DNA of 64,000 bases, taken from contig NC_088799.1 of NCBI RefSeq assembly GCF_011386835.1, positions 66,092,001 through 66,156,000 of the forward strand. Reading direction: 5' to 3'. Positions 9,880-33,063 of the stretch are shown one piece after another. This DNA comes from Chrysemys picta bellii (taxonomy: Eukaryota). The notes under the pieces were generated by a model, which worked only from the letters and a program-made list of their open reading frames with translations, had not been told where the DNA came from and did not search any database. Both the position numbers and the translations under genes were made by a program. Within the stretch, counting starts at the first letter, position 1; every line of letters starts with the position of its first letter.

Positions 9880-11181
9880 ATGGAGCCCGCTGCGAGCATG
9901 GAGCCCGCTGCGACCATCGCTGCAGTTATGGCCGTTGTCAACACCTCGCACCTTATCATCCACCTTTTCCAGAGGCAGATGCTGAGAAATCGGGCGAGGA
10001 GGCTACGGCAGCGCGGTGAGGACATGAAGTCTGAGAGTGGCACAGACCTCTCACAAAGCACGGGACCCCGCGCCGTGAACATCATAGTGGCAATGGGTCA
10101 TGTTGATGCTGTGGAATGGCGATTCTCGGCCCGGGAAACAAGCACGAACTGGTGGGACTGCATAGTGCTGCAGGTCTGGGATGAATCACAGTGGCTATGA
10201 AACTTTCGTATGCGGAAGGGAACTTTCCTGGAACTTTGTGATTTGCTGTCCCCTGCCCTGACGTGCAAGGACACCCGGATGCGAGCAGCCCTGACTGTCC
10301 AGAAGCGAGTGGCCATAGCCCTCTGGAAGCTTGCAATGCCAGACAGCTACCGGTCAGTCGCGAATCACTTTGGCGTCAGCAAATCTACTGTGGGGGTTGC
10401 TGTGATGCAAGTAGCCAATGCAATCGTTGAGCTACTGCTGTCAAAGGTAGTGACCCTTGGAAACGTCCAGGTCATCATAGATGGCTTCGCCGCGATGGGA
10501 TTCCCAAACTGCGGTGGGGCTATAGATGGAACTCACATTCCTATCCTGGGACCGGACCACCAGGCCAGCCAGTACATTAACCAAAAGGGCTACTTTTCAA
10601 TGGTGCTGCAAACACTGGTGGACCATAGGGGACGTTTTACAAACATCAACGTAGGATGGCCGGGCAAGGTTCATGACGCTCGTGTTTTCAGGAACTCTGG
10701 TCTGTTTAGACGGCTGCAGGAAGGTATTTACTTCCCGGAGCAGAAAATAACTCTTGGGGATGTGGAGATGCCTATAGTGATCCTCGGGGACCCAGCCTAC
10801 CCACTAATGCCCTGGCTCATGAAGCCCTATACAGGCGCCCTGGACAGTGAAAAAGAACTCTTCAACTACCGTCTGAGCAAGTGCAGAATGGTGGTGGAGT
10901 GTGCTTTTGGACGTCTCAAGGGGAGATGGAGAAGCTTACTGACTCGCTCTGATCTCAGCAAAACCAATATCCCCATTGTTATTGCAGCTTGCTGTGTGCT
11001 CCACAATCTCTGTGAGAGCAAGGGGGAGACCTTTATGGTGGGGTGGGAGGTTGAGGCGAATAGCCTGACTGCTGATTACGCCCAGCCAGACAGCCGTGCG
11101 ATTAGAAGAGCCCAGCGGGACGCGCTGTGCATCCGGGAGGCTTTGAAAGCTAGGATCCTGAGTGAGCAGGGTAACCTGTGA
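9880..11181 (+). pseudogene. Harbinger DDE transposase (HARBI1-like, DDE_Tnp_4 type) with one in-frame stop
   Basis: ORFs 9880-10200 and 10210-11181 share a frame. TGA at 10198-10200 sits where the paralog at 12012 has Arg (QWLRNFRMRK). GAIDGTH, LGDPAY and VVECAF motifs are present. An 18-bp tandem duplication (9872-9913) repeats the start codon. Confidence 0.92.
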
Positions 11182-12011
11182 CTATTAAGTTTGTTTAAAG
11201 AGAAGCTGAACCTGCCCCCGTTTCTTTACCCACTTACTGTTGACTATCCTCTCCAGCTACATACCCCGTTCACCCCATCCCCCCCCTTCCAACACACGTT
11301 TAAAAATAAAATAAATGGAACTTTGTTAACACCGTTTTCTTTATTACGGATTTTGCGGTAAAGTGTTGAAACTGGGACGCAGACTGTGGTGGGGAGCGGG
11401 CGTAGTGATGTAAAGAATGCTTCTAAACTCGAGGAATGACAGGCTCCTGCTCCTAGAGAGGTCCGCAGTGGTGGACTGGTTGTTTCAACGGAGCCTGCCA
11501 CCCCTCCTTTTCGGGGGCTATGTGACTTTGTGGCGGGGGAGGACGGTTACAGATCCCCTGCTGCGTGGCTCTGTGATCCAGGATAAGGACCGCAGCATAA
11601 GATCTCTATCCACCCTCCCCTGCCACAAAGGGTATGTCTACACTACGGGATTAATCCGAATTTATATAATTCGAATTTGGGAAACAGATTGTATAAAGTA
11701 GAAATGTATGCGGCCACACTAAGCACATTAATTCGGCGGTGTGCGTCCAAGTACCGGGGCTAGCGTCGATTTCTGCAGCGTTGCACTCTGGGTAGCTATC
11801 CCATAGTTCCCGCAGTCTCCCGCGCCCATTGGAATTCTGGGTTGAGATCCCAGTGCCTGATGGGACAAAAAACATCGTCGCAGGTGGTTCTGGGTACAGC
11901 CTCACCTCCTCCCTCACTCCCTCCCTCCCTGCATGAAAGCAACGGACGGCAGACAACCATTTCGCGCCTTTTTTCCTGGGTGAACACTGCAGACTCCATA
12001 CCACGGCAAGC

Positions 12012-13313
12012 ATGGAGCCCGCTCAGCTCAAGACAGCAGTCATGAACATTGTAAACACCTTGCGCGTTCTCGTGGAGTTTATGCTGAGCCAGGACCAGAA
12101 AAACGAGGCAAGGAGGCAGCAGCGGCGGCAGCACAGCGACAAGCATGATGAGGACATGGACATGGACACGGACACAGAATTCTGTGAAACCACAGGCCCC
12201 GGTGCTTTGGAGATCATGTTGTTAATGGGGCAGGTTCTATCCATGGAACGCCAATTCTGGGCAAGGGAAACAAGCACAGACTGGTGGGACCACATAGTGT
12301 TGCAGGTCTGGGACGATTCCCAGTGGCTGCGGAACTTTCGCATGCGTAAGGGCACTTTCATGGAACTTTGTGACTTGCTGTCCCCTGTCCTGAAACGCCA
12401 GAATACCAAGATGAGAGCAGCCCTCACAGTTGAGAAGCGCGTGGCGATAGCCCTGTGGAAGCTTGCAACACCAGACAGCTACCGGTCAGTCGGGAATCAA
12501 TTTGGAGTGGGCAAATCTACGGTGGGGGCTGCTGTGATGCAAGTAGCCAAAGCAATCACTCAGGTGCTGCTACGAAAGGTAGTGACTCTGGGAAATGTGC
12601 AGGCCATAGTGGATGGCTTTGCTGCAATGGGATTCCCTAACTGTGGTGGGGCGATAGATGGAACCCATATCCCTATCTTGGCACCGGAGCACCAAGCCAC
12701 CGAGTACATAAACCGCAAGGGGTACTTTTCAATGGTGCTGCAAGCACTTGTGGATCACAAGGGACGTTTCACCAACATCAACGCGGGCTGGGCGGGAAGG
12801 GTTCATGACGCTCGCGTCTTCAGGAACACTACTCTGTTTAAAGGGCTGCAGCAAGGGACTTACTTTCCGGACCAGAAAATAACCGTTGGGGATGTTGAAA
12901 TGCCAATAGTTATTCTTGGGGACCCAGCCTACCCCTTAATGCCATGGCTCATGAAGCCATACACAGGCAGCTTGGACAGGAGTCAGGAGCTGTTCAACTA
13001 CAGGCTGAGCAAGTGCAGAATGGTGGTAGAATGTGCATTTGGCCGTTTAAAAGGTCGCTGGCGTTCATTATTGACTCGCTCTGACCTCAGCCAAAGAAAT
13101 CTCCCCATTGTTATTTCTGCTTGCTGCGTGCTCCACAATCTCTGTGAAAGTAAGGGGGAGACCTTTATGGCGGGGTGGGAGGCTGAGGCAAATCGCCTGG
13201 CTGCTGATTACGCGCAGCCAGACACCAGGGCGATTAGAAGAGCACACCAGGAAGCGCTGAGCATCAGAGAAGCTTTGAAAACCAGTTTCATGACTGGCCA
13301 GGCTACAGTGTGA
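12012..13313 (+). CDS. Harbinger DDE transposase, intact 433 aa
   Basis: Uninterrupted ORF with an HTH-like segment (LTVEKRVAIALWKLATPDSYRSVGNQFGVGKSTV) and the catalytic D-D-E motifs GAIDGTH / ILGDPAY / MVVECAFGRLKGRW. AATAAA follows at ~13415. Confidence 0.95.
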   Translation: MEPAQLKTAVMNIVNTLRVLVEFMLSQDQKNEARRQQRRQHSDKHDEDMDMDTDTEFCETTGPGALEIMLLMGQVLSMERQFWARETSTDWWDHIVLQVWDDSQWLRNFRMRKGTFMELCDLLSPVLKRQNTKMRAALTVEKRVAIALWKLATPDSYRSVGNQFGVGKSTVGAAVMQVAKAITQVLLRKVVTLGNVQAIVDGFAAMGFPNCGGAIDGTHIPILAPEHQATEYINRKGYFSMVLQALVDHKGRFTNINAGWAGRVHDARVFRNTTLFKGLQQGTYFPDQKITVGDVEMPIVILGDPAYPLMPWLMKPYTGSLDRSQELFNYRLSKCRMVVECAFGRLKGRWRSLLTRSDLSQRNLPIVISACCVLHNLCESKGETFMAGWEAEANRLAADYAQPDTRAIRRAHQEALSIREALKTSFMTGQATV

Positions 13314-13460
13314 AATATCTGTTTGTTTCTCCTTCATGAATACCTGCTCCCTTTATTGATTCTTTTTCTGTAAGGAACCCACCCTCCCCCTTCCCCCAGC
13401 TTGCTTTCAAACCAAATAAAGTCACTATCATTTAAAAATCATTTATTCTTTATTAATAGA

Positions 13461-14074
13461 TTAGAAAAAGAGGGAGGGAACCCGGGTGGGATTTGGGAGG
13501 AGGATCGGTGGGAAGGAAAAGGCCACTAAAAAAAGGTTAAAAAAATGACAGCCTTTTGCTTGGGCTGTCCACTGGGGTGGAATGGGAAGGTGTACGGAGC
13601 CTCCCCCCCCCCACGTTCTTACACATCTGGGTGAGGAGGATACGGAACATGGGGAGGGGGGAGGGGGGTACAGGGGCTGTAGCGGCAGTCTGTTTTCCTG
13701 CAGCCGTTCCTGAAGCTCCATCAGACGCCGGAGCATGTCTGTTTGCTCACGCAGCAGCCCCAGCTTTGCATCCTGCCTCCTCTGATCTTCCTGCCGCCAC
13801 CTCTCATCTCGAGCGTCTCTCCTCTCCTCACGTTGGTCCCTCCTGTCCTCACGTTGGTCCCTCATGTCCTCACGTTGGTCCCTCCTGTCCTCACGTTCAC
13901 TGGCTTCTTTCCTATACTTTGCAACCGTTTCCTTCCACTCATTCAGATGAGCTCTGTCACTGCGGCTGGATTCCATAATTTCTGAAAACATCTCGTCTCG
14001 CGTCTTCTTCTTACGACGCCTTATCTGTGATAGCCTTCGGGATGGAGGAGGGAGGCTTGAGGAATTTGCAGCTG
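13461..14074 (-). CDS. Harbinger Myb/SANT partner protein, exon 2 (nested element)
   Basis: Acceptor TTCCTCTCCCTACAG, phase 1 matches exon 1. Encodes RRRKKKTRDEMFSE and a charged coiled-coil. The tail appears frameshifted at the 10-C run 13603-13612: 8 or 11 C would give GGRLRTPSHSTPVDSPSKRLSFF*, matching the paralog. Confidence 0.82.
13826..13897. repeat. 21-bp tandem repeat (~3.4 copies) encoding REDRRDQ heptads
   Basis: Unit CCTCACGTTGGTCCCTCCTGT at 13826, 13847 and 13868, plus a partial copy at 13889. Confidence 0.92.
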
Positions 14075-14397
14075 CTGTAGGGAGAGGAAAGAAGAGAGAA
14101 TTGTTTAAAAAGATACATTTTGCAGAACAATGCTTATACTCTTTCACGGTGACCAACACTATTCACATTACATAGCACATGTGATTTCTGTGCAAGGTCG
14201 CATTTTGCCTCTTAATACTGAGTGCCTGTGCCTGTGGCTTTGCTGCTAGAGATCACAGGTCCGGGCAACAGAATTCGGCTTGCATGCGGCCAGGGTAAGC
14301 CATTGTCTTACGGCTTCTGCGCCCTCCTTTCCCACATACCAAGCAAAGCCCGTAGAGTGCTGCGGTTTTTCTGTTAACATTCAGCAGCAGCAGAAAA

Positions 14398-14600
14398 CAA
14401 ACTAACCACCCCCCCCCCCGCCATGAATTCTCTGGGATGATCACGGTACCCCTCCCCCCACCGCGTGGCTGGTAACAGGGAAGATCCCTGCAGGAACCAA
14501 ACTAACCCCCCCCCGCCGCCCCCCTCCCGCCATAAATTCTCTGGGATGATCACGGTACCCCTCCCCCCACCGTGTGGCTGGTAACAGGGAAGATCCCTGC
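14398..14600. repeat. ~95-100-bp direct tandem duplication in the Myb intron
   Basis: CAAACTAACC...AATTCTCTGGGATGATCACGGTACCCCTCCCCCCACCG(C/T)GTGGCTGGTAACAGGGAAGATCCCTGC at 14398-14491 and 14498-14600. Confidence 0.9.
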
Positions 14601-14749
14601 TAGCCAAACGCGAAAAGCTCAGGGCCAATTTCCCATCTGCGCTTGGCTAACTGCAGGGAAGGATTTATTTTCCGCCACAGGCAAACAGCCCAGTAGGAAC
14701 GGCCACCTCTGTCCCCTTAATTAAGTTCCCGTATTTCAACCAGGTTACC

Positions 14750-15040
14750 ATGAGTGATATCACTCTCCTGAGGATTACACAACAAGATAAAGAACGGATG
14801 TTGCTTGAATGCCAGCAAACACCGGGACCATACGCTGCCAGGCTTTGTCAGGCAATGATACCAGATTACTTGCTGCAAGCATGGCGTGGTCAAGTGTCCT
14901 ACCATGGAGGACGGAATAAGGATGCACTGCCCAGAAACCTTGTGGCAAGGCTTTTGGAGTACCTCCAGGAGAGCTTCATGGAGATGTCCCTGGAGGATTT
15001 CCGCTCCATCCCCAGACACGTTAACAGACTTTTCCAGTAG
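14750..15040 (+). CDS. Conserved 96-aa third Harbinger ORF (ORF3), antisense in the Myb intron, BEN-domain-like by pattern
   Basis: Aligns without gaps to homologs at 17326-17865 (63/96 identical) and 30639-30932 (43/96). ACCATG start context. ATTAAA at 15087-15092. Confidence 0.75.
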   Translation: MSDITLLRITQQDKERMLLECQQTPGPYAARLCQAMIPDYLLQAWRGQVSYHGGRNKDALPRNLVARLLEYLQESFMEMSLEDFRSIPRHVNRLFQ

Positions 15041-15140
15041 CTGAACTGACCGCGAATGCATCCCTAGTCCTCAGGGCAAAGTAATCATTAAAAACCGTTT
15101 GCTTTTAAAACAAGTTTTATATTTTAAAAGGTAAACTCAC

Positions 15141-15678
15141 CTGAGGTCCCTTCCATGGGGTCAGGGTCTTGGATACTGGCTTGGGAGGGTTGGGAGGGTA
15201 CTTCAGTCAGGGTGAGAAAAAGATCCTGGCTGTTGGGGAGAACGGAGTGCTGTGTGCTCTCTGCAAGCTCATCCTCCTCCTCCTCTCCCCCATCGCCAGA
15301 ATCCTCAGGTGTAGCTGATGAGACTATCCCCGACCCGGAATCCACGATCACAGGTGGGGTAGTGGTGGTGGCCCCCCCTAGAATTGCATGCAGCTCGGCG
15401 TAGAAGCGGCATGTCCGCGGCTCTGACCCAGAGCGACCGTTTGCCTCCTTTGTTTTTTGATAGGCTTGTCTGAGCTCCTTGACTTTCACGCGGCACTGAT
15501 CTGAGTCCCTATTGTGGCCTCTCTCCATCATGCCCTTGGAGATTTTTTCAAAAGTTTTGGCATTTCGTCTTTTAGAACGAAGTTCTGCAAGCACTGAATC
15601 CTCTCCCCATATAGCGATCAGATCCAGTACCTCCCGTACGGTCCATGCTGGTGCTCTTTTTCGATTATCGGCCTGCAT
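15141..15678 (-). CDS. Harbinger Myb/SANT-like DNA-binding protein, exon 1 (nested element)
   Basis: RKRAPAWTVREVLDLIAIWG...QCRVKVKELRQAY...CRFYAELHAIL (Myb_DNA-bind_4/trihelix type). ATG at 15678. Donor CAG|GTGAGT at 15141/15140. The spliced product is ~383 aa. Confidence 0.9.
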
Positions 15679-16353
15679 GGTTACCTGTGCTGATGAGCTA
15701 TCTGTGGTCACCTGTGCTCTCCACGCTGGGCAAACAGGAAATGAAATTCAAATGTTCGCGGGGCTTTTCCTGTCTACCTGGCCAGTGCATCTGAGTTTAG
15801 ATTGCTGTCCAGAGCGGTCACAATGATGCACTGTGGGATAGCTCCCGGAGGCCAATACCATCGAATTGCGGCCACACTATCCCTAATTCGAAATGTTAAA
15901 ATCGATTTTGGCGCTACTCCGCTTGTCGGGGTGGAGTACAGAAATCGATTTAAAGGGCCCTTTATATCGAAATAAATAGCGTCGTTGTGTGGACGGTTGC
16001 AGGGTAAATTCGAATTAAAGCTGATAAATCCGAATTAAAGTCGTAGTGTAGACCAGGCCAAAGTCACATGGGCCCCCCCCCACAGAACATGAAAACCACC
16101 TCCTAGACTGACCAGGGTGCCTAGTGACTGCAATGTGTGTATGACCTTCTGCTGAACCTGCCCCCGTGTCTGTACCCTGGTAAAGGTGACTGTCCTCTCC
16201 AATTACCAACCCCCTTCCTCCCCTTCAAACACACTCTCCTCTAAAAGAACATGATGGAAACAGTAATTAACAGAAACGTATATTTTATTAACAATTACAC
16301 AGTTAGGGGATGAAACTGGGATGGGGGCTTGGGTAGGCAGGAAGGAAAGGACT

Positions 16354-16823: not shown

Positions 16824-17325
16824 CTGTGGGATGGGAAAAAGGGAGTGAATTCCTCACAAAGATAATTTTTTGTGAACAATGAACATAGTCTTTCTCTGTG
16901 AACAAGACCATGCACAGCACCTATCACATGCGCACTCAGGACAAGGTCGAATTTTCGGCCTTCGCATTCAGTGCCTGGGGTCTTGCAGTGAAGATCAGAC
17001 AAGCGGGGCAGGACAGCAGAATTCGGGTAGCAGGCTGACATGGTAAGCCATAGACTTTTGGCTGCTTAAAACTTAAATTAGAGCAGTGCCCTCCTTTCAC
17101 GTTCAAAGCAATGCTCCTAGCGTTGGGCAGTTCCTGCTGCCGGCAATCTGGCAAGCATGAACTCTGCCCCTGTCCCACCCCCTCGCGGCTGTCCACGGGA
17201 AAGATCCCTGTATGCTGCCCCTCTCCCGCCTCCACCGCGTGGCGGTAAACCACCGGTGACAGTTCTGTAAAGGAACAGGCAAGCAGTCCCAATAGTAACA
17301 TTCCCCTAATTCTAAGAAGGTCACC

Positions 17326-17865
17326 ATGAGCGACATCACTCTGCTGAGAATTTCTGAGACCGAGAAAGACCGCATGCTGCATGAAAGCCAGCAAAAACCA
17401 GGGTCGTATGCCACCATGCTCTGCAAGGCAATGATCCCAGAGTACTTGATGATAGCCTGGCAAGGAAAAGTTTCCTACCACGGAGGCAGGGCCGGCTCCA
17501 GGCACCAGCTTCTCAAGCAGGTGCTTGGGGCGGCCGGTTGGGAAAGGGGCGGCAGGTCCAGGTATTCGGCGGCAATTCGGCGGACGGTCCCTCACTCCAG
17601 CTCGGAGTGAAGGACCTCCCGCCGAATTGCCGCCGCAGATCGCGATTGCGATCGCGGCCGCGGCTTTTTTTTTTTTTTTTTTTGGTTTTGGCTGCTTGGG
17701 GCGGCCAAAACCCTGGAGCCGGCTCTGCACGGAGGACACAATAAGGCCGCTCTCCCCAGGAACCTCATGCAAAGGCTTTCCAATTACTTCCAGGAGAGCT
17801 TAGTGGAGATGACCCATGAGGATTTCAGCTCTATCCCCGGACATATAGACCTTCTTTTCCAGTAA
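17326..17865 (+). pseudogene. ORF3 homolog of the outer element, split by a hAT MITE
   Basis: Removing 17487-17735 restores a 96-aa frame MSDITLLRISETEKDRMLHE...YHGGHNKAALPRNL...GHIDLLFQ*. Confidence 0.8.
17487..17727. mobile_element. hAT MITE (CAGGGCCGGCTC family, 241 bp)
   Basis: TIRs CAGGGCCGGCTCC / GGAGCCGGCTCTG. Perfect TSD CACGGAGG (17479-17486, 17728-17735). Confidence 0.93.
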
Positions 17866-18063
17866 CTGCACTGGCAAGGACTAAAAAGTAGAGCGCCTAG
17901 GGGAAACTAATCATGATAAACCGGACATTGTTAGATTCTTTTGCAGTAGTTGCACTGCCAAGGACTAAAACGTTAAGCGCCTAGGGCAAACAAATCATGA
18001 AAAACTCATTGTTAATATTCCTGTTCTGTTCAAAATAAATGTTTACATGTTTAAAACACTTAC

Positions 18064-27044: not shown

Positions 27045-28298
27045 CCCCCTGAAGTGTTTGCAATCCAAAGATTGCAGCATTATTTAGTGCAGGGAAACCT
27101 TGCGCTGAAAGCGAATGGAAGCAAAAGTAAAACTGACACATCTATGCTGAAATGCAAAAGCAGCAAAAATCCAGTCTGGGTTTTAACAAAGAATTGTTCA
27201 GTTTTAGTTATCTACACTATGTTGCTTTGCAAAATGGGTGAGTTTCTGACTTGCAAATGATTTTGAACCTACATTATCCCTTTAGCCACCAGTTTAGCTG
27301 GTCTAATCTTTGTAATTGTTCTGAACCCAGAGTTTCAATGTTGGTTTCCTTTATTTGTTGAATGTTTAATTTGTTAATATTTGGTGATTCCCATTTAATC
27401 CAGCTCCCTCATTCTGAGCTGCATTTTGCTTCTTTTCAGGGAGTGGAAAGAGGGCTTCAAAACACCCCTCCATCAGATCCCACAGCCACAGCTAAATATT
27501 TAGTCATTCCTCAATGCAAATTCTATTTGCAGAGAGATTTCTGATCCAAAATGGGGGATGGGGAACCATAGCTGCCTGTCTCTCCACTGAGACCCAGCTG
27601 CTTCTACCCCCGTTCATGACTATATTTGGGAAGCAGACAGTTTCTTTCTTGGCATGACCCAATGATTTCCTCCAGTAGTAATGCCTTCTTCAGGGTCCTA
27701 ATGCAACAGTGTTTCCAGGCAGACACCAAAGAACAGGAGAGAGGCTTGTTTTCAAGCAGCATGTGCTCAGCTCTCTGGTCTTTTAGCTCTTTAAAAGCAG
27801 CTTCTGTTCTCCATTTACAGAAGCTAAACTGCTGGGCAGGGAATATTTTGAACCGGAGAAGCCCATGAAGCATGGAGCTTCTTCTCCCTCTCCCCTCCTC
27901 CCCCCACCGCATATAAAATTATCTCATCAAACTTTATACAGGCCTTGGCTACACTTGCAGATGTACAGCGCTGTGAGTTAAACCTGACTTCGTGCAGCTG
28001 AGTAGGGAAAGCGCTGCAGTCTGTCCACACTGACAGCTGCCCTGTGCACTGTTGTGGCCACATTTGCGGCAATTGCAGCGCTACTGGGAGCGGTGCATTA
28101 TGGGCAGCTATCCCACAGAGCACCTTTTCCCATTCTGGCGCCGTGGGTTGTGGGAAGGGGGCGTGGGTGTGGGGGATTCTGGGTCCTGTCCCAATACCCC
28201 ATGATGCATCGCTTCGCCTCCCAGAAATCCCTTTGTTTCCGTCCACCTTTGGCGCCATCTTTCAACGGTTTCTGTGCAGCGCGATCTGTCTGCGGGAA

Positions 28299-29551
28299 AT
28301 GGAGTCCGAACTGCTGAGGCATATGCTGACGCATCTCGCCAGCACGTCACGTTTGGCTGTCGAACTATTCCTTAAGATCCAAAGTGACAGTGAGAGTGAA
28401 GGTGAGGAGTCCGACGATGCTATCGAGCCACGTAACGCGTACGACACAAAATTGCTTGTGGCATTCACGGACATGCTCCGCACCGTGGAACGCCGCTTTT
28501 GGGCTCGGGAAACAAGCACCGAGTGGTGGGATCACATCGTCATGGAAGTCTGGGATGACGAGCAGTGGCTGCAGAACTTTCGGATGAGAAAAGCCACTTT
28601 CATGGAACTGTGTGAGGAGCTCGCCCACACCCCGCGGTGCAAGGACACGAGATTGAGAGCTGCCCTGCCAGTGGAGAAGCGGGTGGCTATTGCAATCTGG
28701 AAGCTGGCAACTCCAGACAGCTACCGGTCGGTCGCAAACCAGTTTGGAGTGGGAAAGTCGACCGTTGAAATCGTGTTGATGCAAGTTTGCAAGGCCATTA
28801 ATCGCATCCTACTCAGAAGAACCGTGACTCTGGTAACGTGCAGGAAATAGTGGATGGCTTTGCACAAATGGGATTCCCTAACTGTGGAGGGGCGATAGAT
28901 GGGACGCACATTCCTATTCTGGCACCACCCCACCTAGGATCTGAGTATGTTAATCGGAAGGGGTATTTCTCTATGGTTCTCCAGGTGCTTGTGGATCACC
29001 GTGGGCATTTCATTGACATTAACACAGGCTGGCCCGGAAAGGTGCATGATGCACGCATCTTTCGGAACACTTGGCTGTTCAGGAAGATGCAGGCCAGGAC
29101 TTTTTTCCCAGAGCGTAAGATCACAGTAGGGGAAGTTGAAATGCCCATTGTGATTCTTGGAGATCCCGCTTACCCGTTAATGCCGTGGCTCATGAAACCC
29201 TACACAGGGAGCCTTGACAGCAGCAAGGAACGGTTCAACTACAGGCTGAGCCGGTGCCGAATGACTGTGGAGCGTGCCTTTGGCCGTTTAAAGGGCCGCT
29301 GGCGATCTCTGTATGGGAAGCTGGACTTGGCTGAAAACAGCATCCCCGTGGTTATATCTGCGTGCTGTGCCCTCCATAATATTTGTGAAGGGAAGGGTGA
29401 AAGCTTCACTCAGGCATGGACCTCCGAGGTTCAACACCTGGAGGCTGAATTTGCACAGCCAGAGAGCAGGGCTATTACAGGGTCCCAGCACGGGGCTGCA
29501 AAGATTAGGGATGCCTTGAGGGAGCAATTTGAGGCCGAAAACCAGCAGTGA
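28299..29551 (+). pseudogene. Harbinger DDE transposase with a 1-bp frameshift
   Basis: Start MESELL aligns with the paralogs. At ~28832, CTGGTAAC lacks one base relative to VTLGNVQ. The second frame (28838-29551) carries the GAIDGTH / LGDPAY / TVERAF motifs. Confidence 0.9.
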
Positions 29552-29714
29552 TATCTGGTGCCCTGCACGGGAGTCAAGTGCAGTAGTTCCAATCTTTAGG
29601 AATCAGTGTCTGCTTAGCAGACAAACAGACTTGCAGTGCCTGTTTATTTCCTGGGCTAAGGAGTCTTTTACTTTATGCAATAATAAAGAATGTTTTCAAA
29701 GCCAAAGAATCCAT

Positions 29715-30346
29715 TTATTGAAAAGAAAAAAAAATGTATTTATTGAAAAGGAACAAGGGGGTGGAGTGGGGAACAGTACAATCACAGATTTGCGTATGTC
29801 CTGTCTGGTGTGCTGTGCAGTGAATGCTGCACTTCAGGACAGCTATACTGTATGGTGATGGGGACTGAGTGCAGAGGCTAAGGGTCATGGTTTTCAGGGC
29901 TGGATGGTGAAGATACTGGTGTTGGAGGCAGTGGGTGGCGTGAAGAACACGGAAGTTGGGGAAAGTGGGTTGGAGGTGACAGTGGGGCACAACGGAAAGA
30001 GTTTTGGGACAAGGGCTGTAAGGGGTGGGGTGGCGTTTGCGGTACCGTTCCTCTTTCTGCATGGCTACCAGCTCCTGGATAGCATCTGCTTGGCGCTCCA
30101 GGATGCTTATGAGCCTATCAGTGCTTTGCCGCCGGTGCGCGGTGCTTTGCCGCCGGTGCGCTGCGTTTTCCTGGCAGATCCTGCTTTCTCTCTCCCTCCA
30201 GTTCTGTGCTTTCTCATTCTCTTTAATAGATTGCCGCATCACTTCTTGCAGCATGTCTTCTTTGCTTTTTCGCGGTCTCTTCCTGAGTCTTTGCAGTCTC
30301 TGAGCAGGCGATAAGAGGGACGGCTGAGGTCTCAAGGTTGGTGCAG
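29715..30346 (-). pseudogene. Myb/SANT partner exon 2 (third element), frameshifted tail
   Basis: Acceptor TTTTGCCTATACAG. Encodes RLRKRPRKSKEDMLQE. 21-bp duplication at 30121-30162. The PLQPLSQ homology lies in a shifted frame near 30030. The left coordinate is approximate. Confidence 0.75.
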
Positions 30347-30638
30347 CTGTATAGGCAAAATGCAACATTTAACAGAGGCAGCATTGTTTATACCAGACAG
30401 AGTAATGATTCCCCCCACACTTAAGGAGTAGAAAACACACAGGGTCTACACAATAGCATAATTTTCCCGTCCAAAACAGAGCACACACATCCCATGGGAG
30501 CCTCAAAATGGTGAGTAAGGGGGACTGATTGTTTCAGGGCAGCACTGTCCTCTGGGTTTCTGTGCCTTGGGGAGAGCCAACAGCTTCAGGGGGTACCTAC
30601 ACTGAACACTGTCCCAACATTTTCCACAGGAGTTCGTC

Positions 30639-30932
30639 CTGGACGATATCTCGCTGCTAAGGGTGACCTGGGAGGCAAGGGAGGGTCTTCTACTGCAATG
30701 CGGCTTCCGCCCTGGCCCATATGCAGCTTGCCTGTGTGCAGCAATGGTCCCCCCGCCCCTCGCGGCACAGTGGCACGGACACGTTAGCCTGGCTGGAACA
30801 AGGACCATGGTGGCTCTCCCGGTAAACCTGCGCAAGCGCATTGCACACGTTCTGGATGAGACATTCGAGAAGATTACCGAGGCCGATTACCGCGTTGTGA
30901 TAAACCACATCAATGCACTATTCCACATCTAG
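30639..30932 (+). CDS. ORF3 homolog of the third element (no ATG; CTG at the aligned start)
   Basis: LDDISLLRVTWEAREGLLLQCGFRPGPYAACLCAAMVP...ALPVNLRKRI...HINALFHI* is 43/96 identical to 14750-15040 without gaps. Preceded by the acceptor-like ACATTTTCCACAG at 30617-30629. Confidence 0.65.
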   Translation: MDDISLLRVTWEAREGLLLQCGFRPGPYAACLCAAMVPPPLAAQWHGHVSLAGTRTMVALPVNLRKRIAHVLDETFEKITEADYRVVINHINALFHI

Positions 30933-31006
30933 GCATGCATGCCTAACCCTCCTCTCCCAAAGATCCCGCACCGAAAAAATTCCTTCCCGGAAAAAAAACC
31001 GCTTAC

Positions 31007-31528
31007 CGGGAACCTGCTCTTCTGTTTGTCCTCCACCAAGTTCCGGCCGCTGCGACTGGCTACCTTCCTCCTGGCTCGAGAAGAGCTCCTGGCTGCATGG
31101 CTCCAGGGATTCCGGGATGTCTCCATCCGGCCCACCACCATCACTCCCGTTTTCCTCCTCCTCTTCCTCCCCCCTGCACACCAGCTCTGAAGTGTCCATG
31201 GTGGTGCTCGGAGTGGAGGTGGGGTTAACCCCAAGTATCGCATCCAGCTCTTTGTAGAATCGGCAGGTCGCAGGGGGAGCACCAGAGCGGCCATTTGCGT
31301 GCGGGCTTTGCGGTAGGCACTCCGCAGCTCCTTGACTTTAATCCTGCACTGCAGGGTGACCCGGTCATGGCCCCTTTCCATCATGTCCTTTGATACCTTC
31401 CCAAAGGTATCATAATTCCTACGGCTGGAGCGCAGCTGGGACTGGACAGCTTCCTCCCCCGAAACATTGATGAGGTCCAGCAACTCGCCATTGCTCCATG
31501 CTGGGGCTCGCTTGGCGCGTGGAGGCAT
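31007..31528 (-). pseudogene. Myb/SANT partner exon 1 (third element) with a 1-bp frameshift
   Basis: MPPRAKRAPAWSNGELLDLI...QCRIKVKELRSAYRK shifts at ~31300 into ANGRSGAPPATCRFYKELDAIL. Donor G|GTAAGC at 31007/31006. Confidence 0.85.
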
Positions 31529-33063
31529 GGTCACCTGGAAAGATTCGCTGATAGCACTCCATGCCACGCCGGGCTGAGCAAACAGGAAGGGGATTTTTAA
31601 AATTCCCGGGGAATGTAAAGGGTCGGTCACATGGTTGGTTACCTGAGGCCAGGGCAGTAGAGTTTGAACTGATGACCAGAGTGGCTAGAACAGGCATTGT
31701 GGGATACTGCCGAATAATTCTGGAGGCCATTCACAGCACATTGGGCGGCCACACTGGCGCCGCAGCGCTGCAGCGGCAGCGCAATACTCACTATTCCTCT
31801 CGGAGAGGTGGAGTACATGCAGCGCTGCAACCACGGAGATACAGTGCTGCACATGCCTTGCCAGTGTGGACGGGGAGTGAGTTACAGCGTTGGGGGAGCC
31901 TTTACAGCGCTGTAACTCGCAAGTGTAGCCAAGGCCACAGAGAGAAAATAAAGCTCATACAGTGAATTCTGTATTTGGGTTTTATATTTAGGATGAGCAA
32001 TATTGCAACCCCAAAATGTTCTGAGATCATGAGTCAGGGCCCAAAGATCATGAGGAAAAAACAGAACACATATATGTTGGGTAACCACAAGGGCTAGAAA
32101 CTCCCCCCCCCCTTTCCCAGTAATTAAAAGCCAAGATTCTCCCATGATCACAGGACTCAGAGAGCTGGGGCTTTAAGAAAAGTGCCAAATATTGTGAGAT
32201 TTGTAAAAACCAAGAAGACTTGGCAACACTGGCTGAGAAGAAGGATGGTCTTGTAGTTCAGGCCCAAGACTGGGACTCACCAGGTCTAGAATCAATTTCC
32301 TGCTCTGCAGCCATCTCCAGTGTTTGATCTTGGACAAGCCACTTCATCTATCTGTAAAATAGAACTAATGCTGTCTGTTTTGTCTATTTAGATGGTAACC
32401 TCTTCAAGGCAAGGCCTGTGTTTCACTATGGGCCTGCAGTGCCTAGCATAATAGGGCTCTAAGTCCTACTGTGATACAAATAAGTAATAATTAGTGTATT
32501 TGGAAAAGACTATGGGAAGCGTTCCGAGAAACCATCCACAAATAACTCTCTCCTAGCTGCTTTAGAGCAATGCTACATTATTCCTTGTTTTTAGCCCTAA
32601 CTTTCTTTATCATCATTTTGTAATTTCTATTGGGAAACTCTGGTCACCTCTTATCCAGGGAAATAAGAAACTCCCTCATCTGTTCCATTTCTTAGATACC
32701 TGATGCCACCTGGCACTATGCTCATCTTAGAGGCAGCAACCGCTTCTACAGCATGGCAACTAAAATGGCACACAACTCTCCAGATGGGAACTAACTCTTG
32801 CTTCACATGGAATGATTTATTTCTGTTCCCTCCCTCTGCTTGCAGTCACTCCTTGTTTACCTCTGTCCTATTTTGTACTGCTGCTCTGCAATAAACTGAG
32901 AGTTCAAGGCCTTCTCCATAGTAACCTCAGGCCCAGTTCAGCACAGATACATGCATGCCCATCCCATTGATTATAATTGGAATGCTAAGTGGATTTGGGA
33001 GCAGAATTTAGCTTGAGATCTTATGCTTACAATCTTGTTTTATGATCTGTCTGTTAAAGCACA

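Follow-up and report, generated by a model that had tools for sequence, protein, structure and literature searches.

The question raised by this locus is whether the open frame that lies within the Myb intron of each of three turtle Harbinger transposons adds a third coding module to these elements and, if so, what kind of protein it encodes and how it is expressed. Harbinger/PIF elements are textbook two-protein DNA transposons, and their domesticated pairs include HARBI1/NAIF1, ALP1/ALP2 and HDP1/HDP2. From the letters of the sequence, the initial annotation had proposed a free-standing third gene encoding a BEN-like domain, and had stated that Harbingers are usually described as two-gene systems. 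On this last point the open literature searched agrees, as the elements are described there as having two ORFs (PMC4482050, PMC9392472, PMC9710019). Neither a third ORF nor a BEN domain linked to Harbinger/PIF was found in the open full-text literature searched.

The window, that is, the whole 64-kb stretch of Chrysemys picta bellii DNA that was analysed, is free of N and contains three Harbinger elements, each with a DDE_Tnp_4 transposase on the + strand and a two-exon Myb/SANT-like gene on the minus strand. Element 1 (11630..16059, + strand, 4430 bp) has every coding part intact and is nested in element 2; reading of its end sequences revealed a 3-bp target duplication, AAA (11627-11629 and 16060-16062), and inverted ends at 11636-11665 and 16024-16053. 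Its transposase ORF (12012..13313, + strand, 433 aa), which is followed by AATAAA at 13415, matches DDE_Tnp_4 (PF13359, E = 5.2e-36, 12012-13310), and its Myb gene matches Myb_DNA-bind_4 (PF13837, E = 1.7e-20, 15124-15711, minus strand). The latter gene consists, on the minus strand, of exon 1 (15141..15711), which contains the Myb/SANT-like domain, an intron of 1066 nt (14075..15140), and exon 2 (13461..14074), with GT-AG junctions (donor CAG/GTGAGT, acceptor ...ctccctacag/CAGCTG); the exon that is the subject of this study, hereafter the BEN exon after its predicted fold, occupies the opposite strand of this intron. With intact transposase, Myb and BEN frames, element 1 looks like a recently active copy.

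Element 2 extends over about 9.9-11.6 kb and 16.06-19 kb, split by element 1 in a Harbinger-in-Harbinger arrangement, and its transposase remnant (9898..11181, + strand) shows 71% amino acid identity to that of element 1 and an in-frame TGA at 10198. Element 3 (27941..31936, + strand, 3996 bp) has perfect 18-nt inverted ends (GGCCTTGGCTACACTTGC) and a 3-bp duplication, ACA, and a frameshift near 28832-28850 splits its transposase ORF (28299-29551, + strand) over two frames. Elements 2 and 3 are dead copies; their BEN frames nonetheless remain open. The usual Harbinger target duplication is a 3-bp TWA. The inverted ends and 3-bp duplications that characterize Harbingers were found in elements 1 and 3, with duplications reading AAA and ACA instead of TWA. 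A search of the whole window against Rfam gave no matches.

The 96-97-codon + strand frames reported in the initial annotation inside the Myb intron of all three elements were recovered at the same coordinates, and the ungapped identities of 63/96 and 43/96 were reproduced exactly; copies 2 and 3 share 34/96 residues in an ungapped alignment. In element 1 (copy 1), the frame as first described comprises 96 codons plus the stop (14750-15040, + strand) and belongs to an exon at 14744..15040, preceded by the phase-0 acceptor ttcaaccag/GTTACCATG, with its AG at 14742-14743. In element 2 (copy 2), the exon starts on the + strand at 17320 (acceptor ctaagaag/GTCACCATG; ORF from 17326) and is divided into a 5' part (17320..17486) and a 3' part that includes the stop codon (17736..17865) by a 241-bp hAT-type MITE (17487..17727) with inverted ends CAGGGCCGGCTCC.../...GGAGCCGGCTCTG and an 8-bp target duplication, CACGGAGG, at 17479-17486 and 17728-17735. 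In element 3 (copy 3), the + strand exon lies at 30630..30932 behind the phase-0 acceptor ttttccacag/GAGTTCGTCCTG, and its frame (30639-30932, + strand) comprises 97 codons plus the stop. The stops align within one codon, as had been claimed, those of copies 1 and 2 being flush and copy 3 being one codon longer. The accompanying statement that the ATGs have A at -3 holds for copies 1 and 2 (ACCATG) and fails for copy 3, which has CTG at 30639, no ATG, and a GTG at 30663 as its earliest possible in-frame start.

Polyadenylation signals follow the frame in two elements, in agreement with the earlier description. In element 1, ATTAAA is located on the + strand at 15087..15092, 47 nt past the stop, and is kept in the Malaclemys and Chelonia copies; in element 2, AATAAA occurs at 18034, 169 nt past the copy-2 stop. 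Neither AATAAA nor ATTAAA was found in the 300 nt after the stop of copy 3. Upstream of the exon, a conserved 25-nt block, cacaggcaaacagcccagtaggaac (14676..14700, + strand), lies 44-68 nt 5' of the acceptor and is recognizable when elements 1 and 2 are aligned with two copies from other loci; it may act as a signal for splicing or belong to an internal promoter. The segment 14650-14799 shows 97% identity between close copies, versus 89-92% across the remaining intron. The original description of the frame as antisense in the Myb intron is true, and the exon is also sense to the transposase and downstream of it, which is the more informative description.

The frame is real coding sequence under purifying selection. 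It is stop-free in the three copies, and most of the other frames contain 1-9 stops per copy, except for one minus frame, which is free of stops in copy 1 alone. The differences between copies 1 and 2 are distributed among codon positions as 22/12/38, and the earlier observation that their first nine codons differ only synonymously (AGT/AGC, GAT/GAC, CTC/CTG, AGG/AGA) was reproduced. Codon frames were compared by the NG86 method among the window copies and copies from five other loci (Malaclemys, Chelonia, alligator and one short-read contig). The dN/dS ratio of the BEN frame was 0.22 between copies 1 and 2 (Fisher p = 7e-8) and 0.38 between copies 2 and 3; between copies 1 and 3, dS was saturated, with pN of 0.41 versus pS of 0.75. 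For the element 1/element 2 pair, the transposase gave a ratio of 0.30 and Myb exon 1 one of 0.17. When the five extra loci were included, the 36 pairwise comparisons gave between-family values mostly between 0.13 and 0.45. The remaining five frames gave ratios of 0.5-2.6, with stops in most.

Comparisons at the nucleotide level point to the same segment. In a blastn alignment of elements 1 and 2, the central ~840 nt of the intron contain a single conserved island, positions 14726-15048, and, in the comparison of element 1 with a 91%-identical Malaclemys copy, the BEN exon reaches 98.6%, the highest identity of all segments (transposase, 93.6%; Myb exon 1, 95.3%; non-coding, 85-92%). The window copies represent three distinct Harbinger families, and the BEN frame is conserved in each. 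Two other assignments of this segment were considered and rejected. A minus-strand ORF of 114 aa (14717-15061), open in copy 1, is interrupted by stops in copies 2 and 3, has a dN/dS of about 1, and is a by-product of the sense frame; membership of the exon in the Myb gene is excluded because it lies on the wrong strand.

An AG acceptor in phase 0 was found directly upstream of the three copies, 6-9 nt 5' of the frame start originally given. A candidate donor, also in phase 0, is present in the element 1 transposase on the + strand (12300..12311, TTGCAG/GTCTGG), its last exon base being 12305, after transposase codon 98, and equivalent + strand candidates occur in element 2 (last exon base 10173, CTGCAG/GTCTGG) and element 3 (last exon base 28547, ATGGAA/GTCTGG). 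Joining donor and acceptor in silico yields an open frame in all three elements, of 196, 190 and 182 aa in elements 1, 2 and 3, respectively. Conservation of this donor does not constitute independent evidence, because it sits in a conserved coding motif (VLQ/VWD); moreover, the element 3 donor would be a weak GAA/GT, and the donor used in a Chelonia relative is absent from the window copy.

The evidence for splicing comes from annotation-pipeline gene models (RefSeq for Malaclemys, BGI for Chelonia, and models from alligator). In the Malaclemys RefSeq gene LOC128825970, isoform X1 (P0124) contains transposase residues 1-98, and isoform X2 (P0007) has this transposase exon behind an alternative 5' exon; in both, the transposase part ends with ...WWDRIVLQ and is joined to the BEN exon. 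The genomic junction reads TTGCAG/GTATGG ... aaccag/GTGAGC, its donor being homologous to the candidate site of element 1, with ATTAAA 32 nt past the stop. The locus of this fusion model (L006, 7963-10471) is an internally deleted Harbinger in which most of the transposase is gone except its N-terminus, and in which the Myb gene is retained together with the BEN exon. Three Chelonia models (P0003, P0008 and P0035) and one from alligator (P0060) also link 5' portions of the transposase to the BEN exon; GT-AG junctions were verified in P0124, P0003, P0008 and P0060. The Chelonia and alligator models share the acceptor and differ in their donors; since the BGI models of Chelonia use several donors, some of these may be ab initio guesses. 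Two short-read contigs (L007 and L008, for P0112 and P0014) follow the genome colinearly through the intron and the Myb exon, and are genomic rather than spliced. Across database proteins, the domain is C-terminal in many and is preceded by a transposase N-terminal match in nine. A fold model of the fusion predicts an N-terminal helix at residues 4-36 (33 residues, pLDDT about 80) and a BEN part with pLDDT > 92, separated by an acidic disordered linker and short helices.

Regarding the nature of the domain, the claim that it is a BEN domain stood by predicted fold and did not stand by sequence. The Pfam BEN model (PF10523, gathering score 23.2 bits), proposed as a check in the initial annotation, gave no match to the three window copies at E <= 10. 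A profile search of 1.84 billion representative proteins retrieved 109 relatives of the domain, and an alignment of 81 near-full-length domains among them shows the conserved pattern D-I-x-L ... P-x-x-Y-A ... W-x-x-x-V-x-x-x-G-x-R-x-K-x-A-L-P-x-N-L ... F ... D ... I-N. Weak matches to Pfam BEN were found in 19 of these 81 relatives (E <= 10, best 0.0023), with any other family matching three at most; their scores, 13-15 bits, lie below the cut-off and span model positions 20-75 of 76. When PDB chains were searched by sequence and by profile, with 5-sequence and 81-sequence profiles and two distant relatives, no BEN chain was found, and the matches obtained, such as TFIIA gamma, were at chance level.

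The structural comparison suggested alongside, AlphaFold and Foldseek against BANP, BEND3 and Insensitive, had the opposite outcome. AlphaFold2 run with the 81-sequence alignment predicted five helices and a small hairpin with high confidence (pLDDT 97.1, pTM 0.88), and BEN domains accounted for 18 of the 19 top Foldseek matches in the PDB (BEND3 BEN3/BEN4, BEND6, NACC1, BANP and Insv). The best match was BEND3 BEN4 (7w27_C; probability 1.00, TM 0.68/0.60, rmsd 2.8, 95 columns); TM values of the structure matches were 0.55-0.68 over the whole domain, with weak Foldseek E-values of 0.03-2.6. In a library of viral structures (BFVD), poxvirus and bracovirus BEN proteins ranked at the top. The frame is therefore called here a divergent BEN-fold domain on the basis of the predicted model, below Pfam-level membership. 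By residue count, the turtle domain is near neutral in charge, and it lacks the basic tail found at the C-terminus of the relatives from fish and frogs, so that DNA binding by it is not assured.

Among database proteins, the frame is matched best by a RefSeq protein of Malaclemys terrapin, at 99% identity. Close relatives were found in Malaclemys, Chrysemys, Trachemys, Chelonia, Caretta, Mauremys and Gekko, and more distant ones in Pelodiscus and Alligator, the alligator copy lying 2.6 kb downstream of a degraded Harbinger transposase. Remote relatives (20-28% identity) comprise "Pat-like" proteins of Xenopus, sturgeon and zebrafish, along with the C-terminal portions of gene models from frogs and teleosts. 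At the one sturgeon locus examined (L005, in which 3.3 kb are N), no Harbinger genes were found nearby. The linkage of the exon to Harbinger is shown here only for reptile elements, not for Harbingers in general. Proteins called "Pat" or "Pat-like", a name taken from a germ-plasm protein of Xenopus, zebrafish LOC541387 and a Pelodiscus gene (P0087, P0110, P0051, P0099) have a related C-terminal domain; weak Pfam BEN matches were obtained for the zebrafish protein and other relatives, and none for P0087 and P0099. Judging from these similarities, the "Pat"-related vertebrate family may be an unrecognised BEN branch. In three very long gene models (P0044, P0050, P0081), part of the domain is repeated 6-10 times in tandem, and these repeats look like amplified fragments.

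The exon also appears in host genes. It is the annotated terminal exon of TEDC1 X5, PFKFB4 X4, RAB3C X3 and LOC128826488 X2, and the turtle RefSeq models of host-gene isoforms ending in it (P0006, P0027/P0117, P0002, P0013 and P0005) belong to TEDC1, PFKFB4, RAB3C, a glycine-transporter-like gene and a CDK-like kinase. For PFKFB4, the isoform is annotated in Trachemys as well as in Chrysemys. The acceptor of the exon is thus treated as usable time and again by annotation pipelines.

How the frame is expressed can be judged from its 5' end. Had it been a free-standing gene, as initially proposed, a 96-aa protein would be made from the ATG at 14750 under its own promoter in the Myb intron. The families of copies 1 and 2 do keep ACCATG, with A at -3, the 25-nt block 44-68 nt upstream could be a promoter element, and several database models start at or near this Met (P0010, P0014, P0026). 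However, neither copy 3 nor its family has the ATG: the sequence in element 3 and its relatives is (E)F-V/I-L-E-D-I-S-L-L, without Met; Leu, Val or Ile occupies the "start" column in element 3 and at least eight relatives, and Met is a minority residue there, present in 11 of about 30 close and 1 of 43 distant relatives. Conservation as coding sequence extends, in addition, to the two or three codons that precede the ATG, the Val codon two positions upstream varying synonymously among copies (GTT/GTC/GTG), and all the multi-exon gene models checked use the AG acceptor directly upstream. A free-standing gene is thus rather unlikely. Instead, the Leu starts, together with the phase-0 acceptors and the gene models, lead to the frame being read as an alternative terminal exon, and it is probable, with some reserve, that it forms the coding part of a 3'-terminal exon in the transposase transcription unit, yielding a protein composed of the transposase N-terminus and the BEN-fold domain.

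Two further alternatives concern the identity and the value of the domain to the element. The resemblance to BEN could be one of chance, the domain being a small helical one of unrelated origin that serves, for example, in protein-protein binding only. The failure of Pfam BEN to match the window copies, that of sequence and profile searches to find BEN chains in the PDB, and Foldseek E-values above 0.01 are consistent with this; against it, almost all of the best matches in each of two independent libraries of structures are BEN domains, at TM 0.55-0.68, and the weak matches of 19 of the 81 relatives converge on a single Pfam model, over positions 20-75 of 76, which makes chance resemblance improbable. 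The exon could also be a passenger, a host BEN-type terminal exon captured once and devoid of function in the element, whose conservation would simply be due to the copies being young. Distant relatives with other N-termini ("Pat-like" proteins) in fish, frogs and turtles make a host origin plausible, and the layout of acceptor and poly(A) site is that of a captured terminal exon. Youth, however, fits poorly with between-family dS values from 0.9 to saturation at which dN/dS is still 0.13-0.45, with the retention of an open frame by at least five diverged turtle families, with an alligator relative that lies beside a degraded Harbinger transposase, or with a constraint equal to that on the transposase and Myb genes. 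A mere passenger is accordingly very improbable.

Under the terminal-exon reading, expression would proceed as follows. Transcription would begin at the transposase end of the element and could have two outcomes. Polyadenylation past the transposase ORF, at the AATAAA at 13415, would give the full DDE transposase. Alternatively, read-through into the opposite-strand Myb intron would allow a donor within the first ~100 transposase codons (12305/12306 in element 1) to be spliced to the acceptor at 14743/14744, with polyadenylation of the spliced form at the ATTAAA at 15087. The product, of about 182-196 aa, would combine the transposase N-terminus, predicted to comprise a long helix, an acidic linker and a conserved FWARETSTDWWD motif, with the BEN-fold domain, and would have neither the helix-turn-helix nor the DDE catalytic domain. 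In the families of elements 1 and 2, the internal ATG could also give the 96-aa domain alone. Production of this isoform in vivo is put forward from the sequence signals and gene models.

Solved BEN domains bind specific DNA and have mostly repression or insulation roles. By analogy with them, the BEN domain of the product may bind DNA or chromatin partners, and the fusion protein would then be a catalytically dead regulator or targeting factor, for instance an autorepressor like the truncated P-element proteins. A passage of PMC9710019, citing Sinzelle 2008, states that the Myb-like protein of Harbinger3_DR binds the transposase and carries it into the nucleus. As a hypothesis, the fusion protein might perhaps compete with the full-length transposase for the Myb-like partner. 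That reptile Harbingers make, through alternative splicing, a third functional protein formed by the transposase N-terminus and BEN, lacking the catalytic core and regulating or targeting the element, is a serious possibility that stops somewhat short of probable.

Several known systems resemble parts of this arrangement. Other PIF/Harbinger elements, such as zebrafish Harbinger3_DR, share with the turtle elements a DDE_Tnp_4 transposase, a convergent Myb/SANT-like gene, short inverted ends and 3-bp duplications, whereas the turtle elements add a conserved BEN-fold exon in the Myb intron and have AAA/ACA in place of TWA. The predicted five-helix fold with its hairpin superimposes on the BEN-DNA complexes of BEN proteins (BEND3, BEND6, BANP, NACC1 and Drosophila Insensitive); unlike these, the turtle domain is transposon-encoded, is 10-20% identical to them, stays below the Pfam threshold, and its DNA binding is putative. 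The nearest named sequence relatives, "Protein Pat" and Pat-like proteins of Xenopus, sturgeon and zebrafish (LOC541387), were recovered at profile E-values of 1e-8 to 1e-4; they too have the domain at the C-terminus, some with weak Pfam BEN matches, but they are 20-28% identical and have coiled-coil N-terminal regions and a basic C-terminal tail.

Truncated P-element repressors (66-kDa, KP) arise by alternative splicing or deletion. Like them, the proposed turtle product would be a shorter protein sharing the transposase N-terminus and lacking the catalytic domain, and thus a candidate regulator of its own element; the P repressors, however, keep their own THAP DNA-binding domain, whereas the turtle product would drop the helix-turn-helix and gain BEN. 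Vertebrate host-transposase fusion genes reportedly formed through splice-site capture, as Cosby et al. are said to have described in 2021. The turtle case is comparable in that a transposon exon with its acceptor serves as an alternative exon in TEDC1, PFKFB4, RAB3C and the glycine-transporter-like gene, and differs in that an accessory BEN exon is captured, rather than a transposase DNA-binding domain. In addition, a passage of PMC10579616, citing Pan et al. 2023, attributes a BEN-like fold to DUF3504 of Crypton-derived ZMYM proteins, and therefore, as far as that passage goes, transposon-linked BEN-like domains have precedent. Identity of the frame itself with DUF3504 was considered and rejected, as the two occupy separate regions in P0036 (ORF3-like repeats at 1152-1472 versus DUF3504 at 1629-1794).

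A conserved third coding module would alter the Harbinger parts list for at least one vertebrate lineage, and a protein joining the transposase N-terminus to BEN provides a concrete candidate for self-regulation or targeting of the element. The exon is, moreover, a natural source of BEN-domain exons for host genes, and several turtle genes have annotated isoforms ending in this way. If reptile Harbingers do make such a third protein, the elements would also supply host genes with BEN exons, since an acceptor and a poly(A) site come with the exon, and BEN would be another transposon-dispersed DNA-binding domain in vertebrates.
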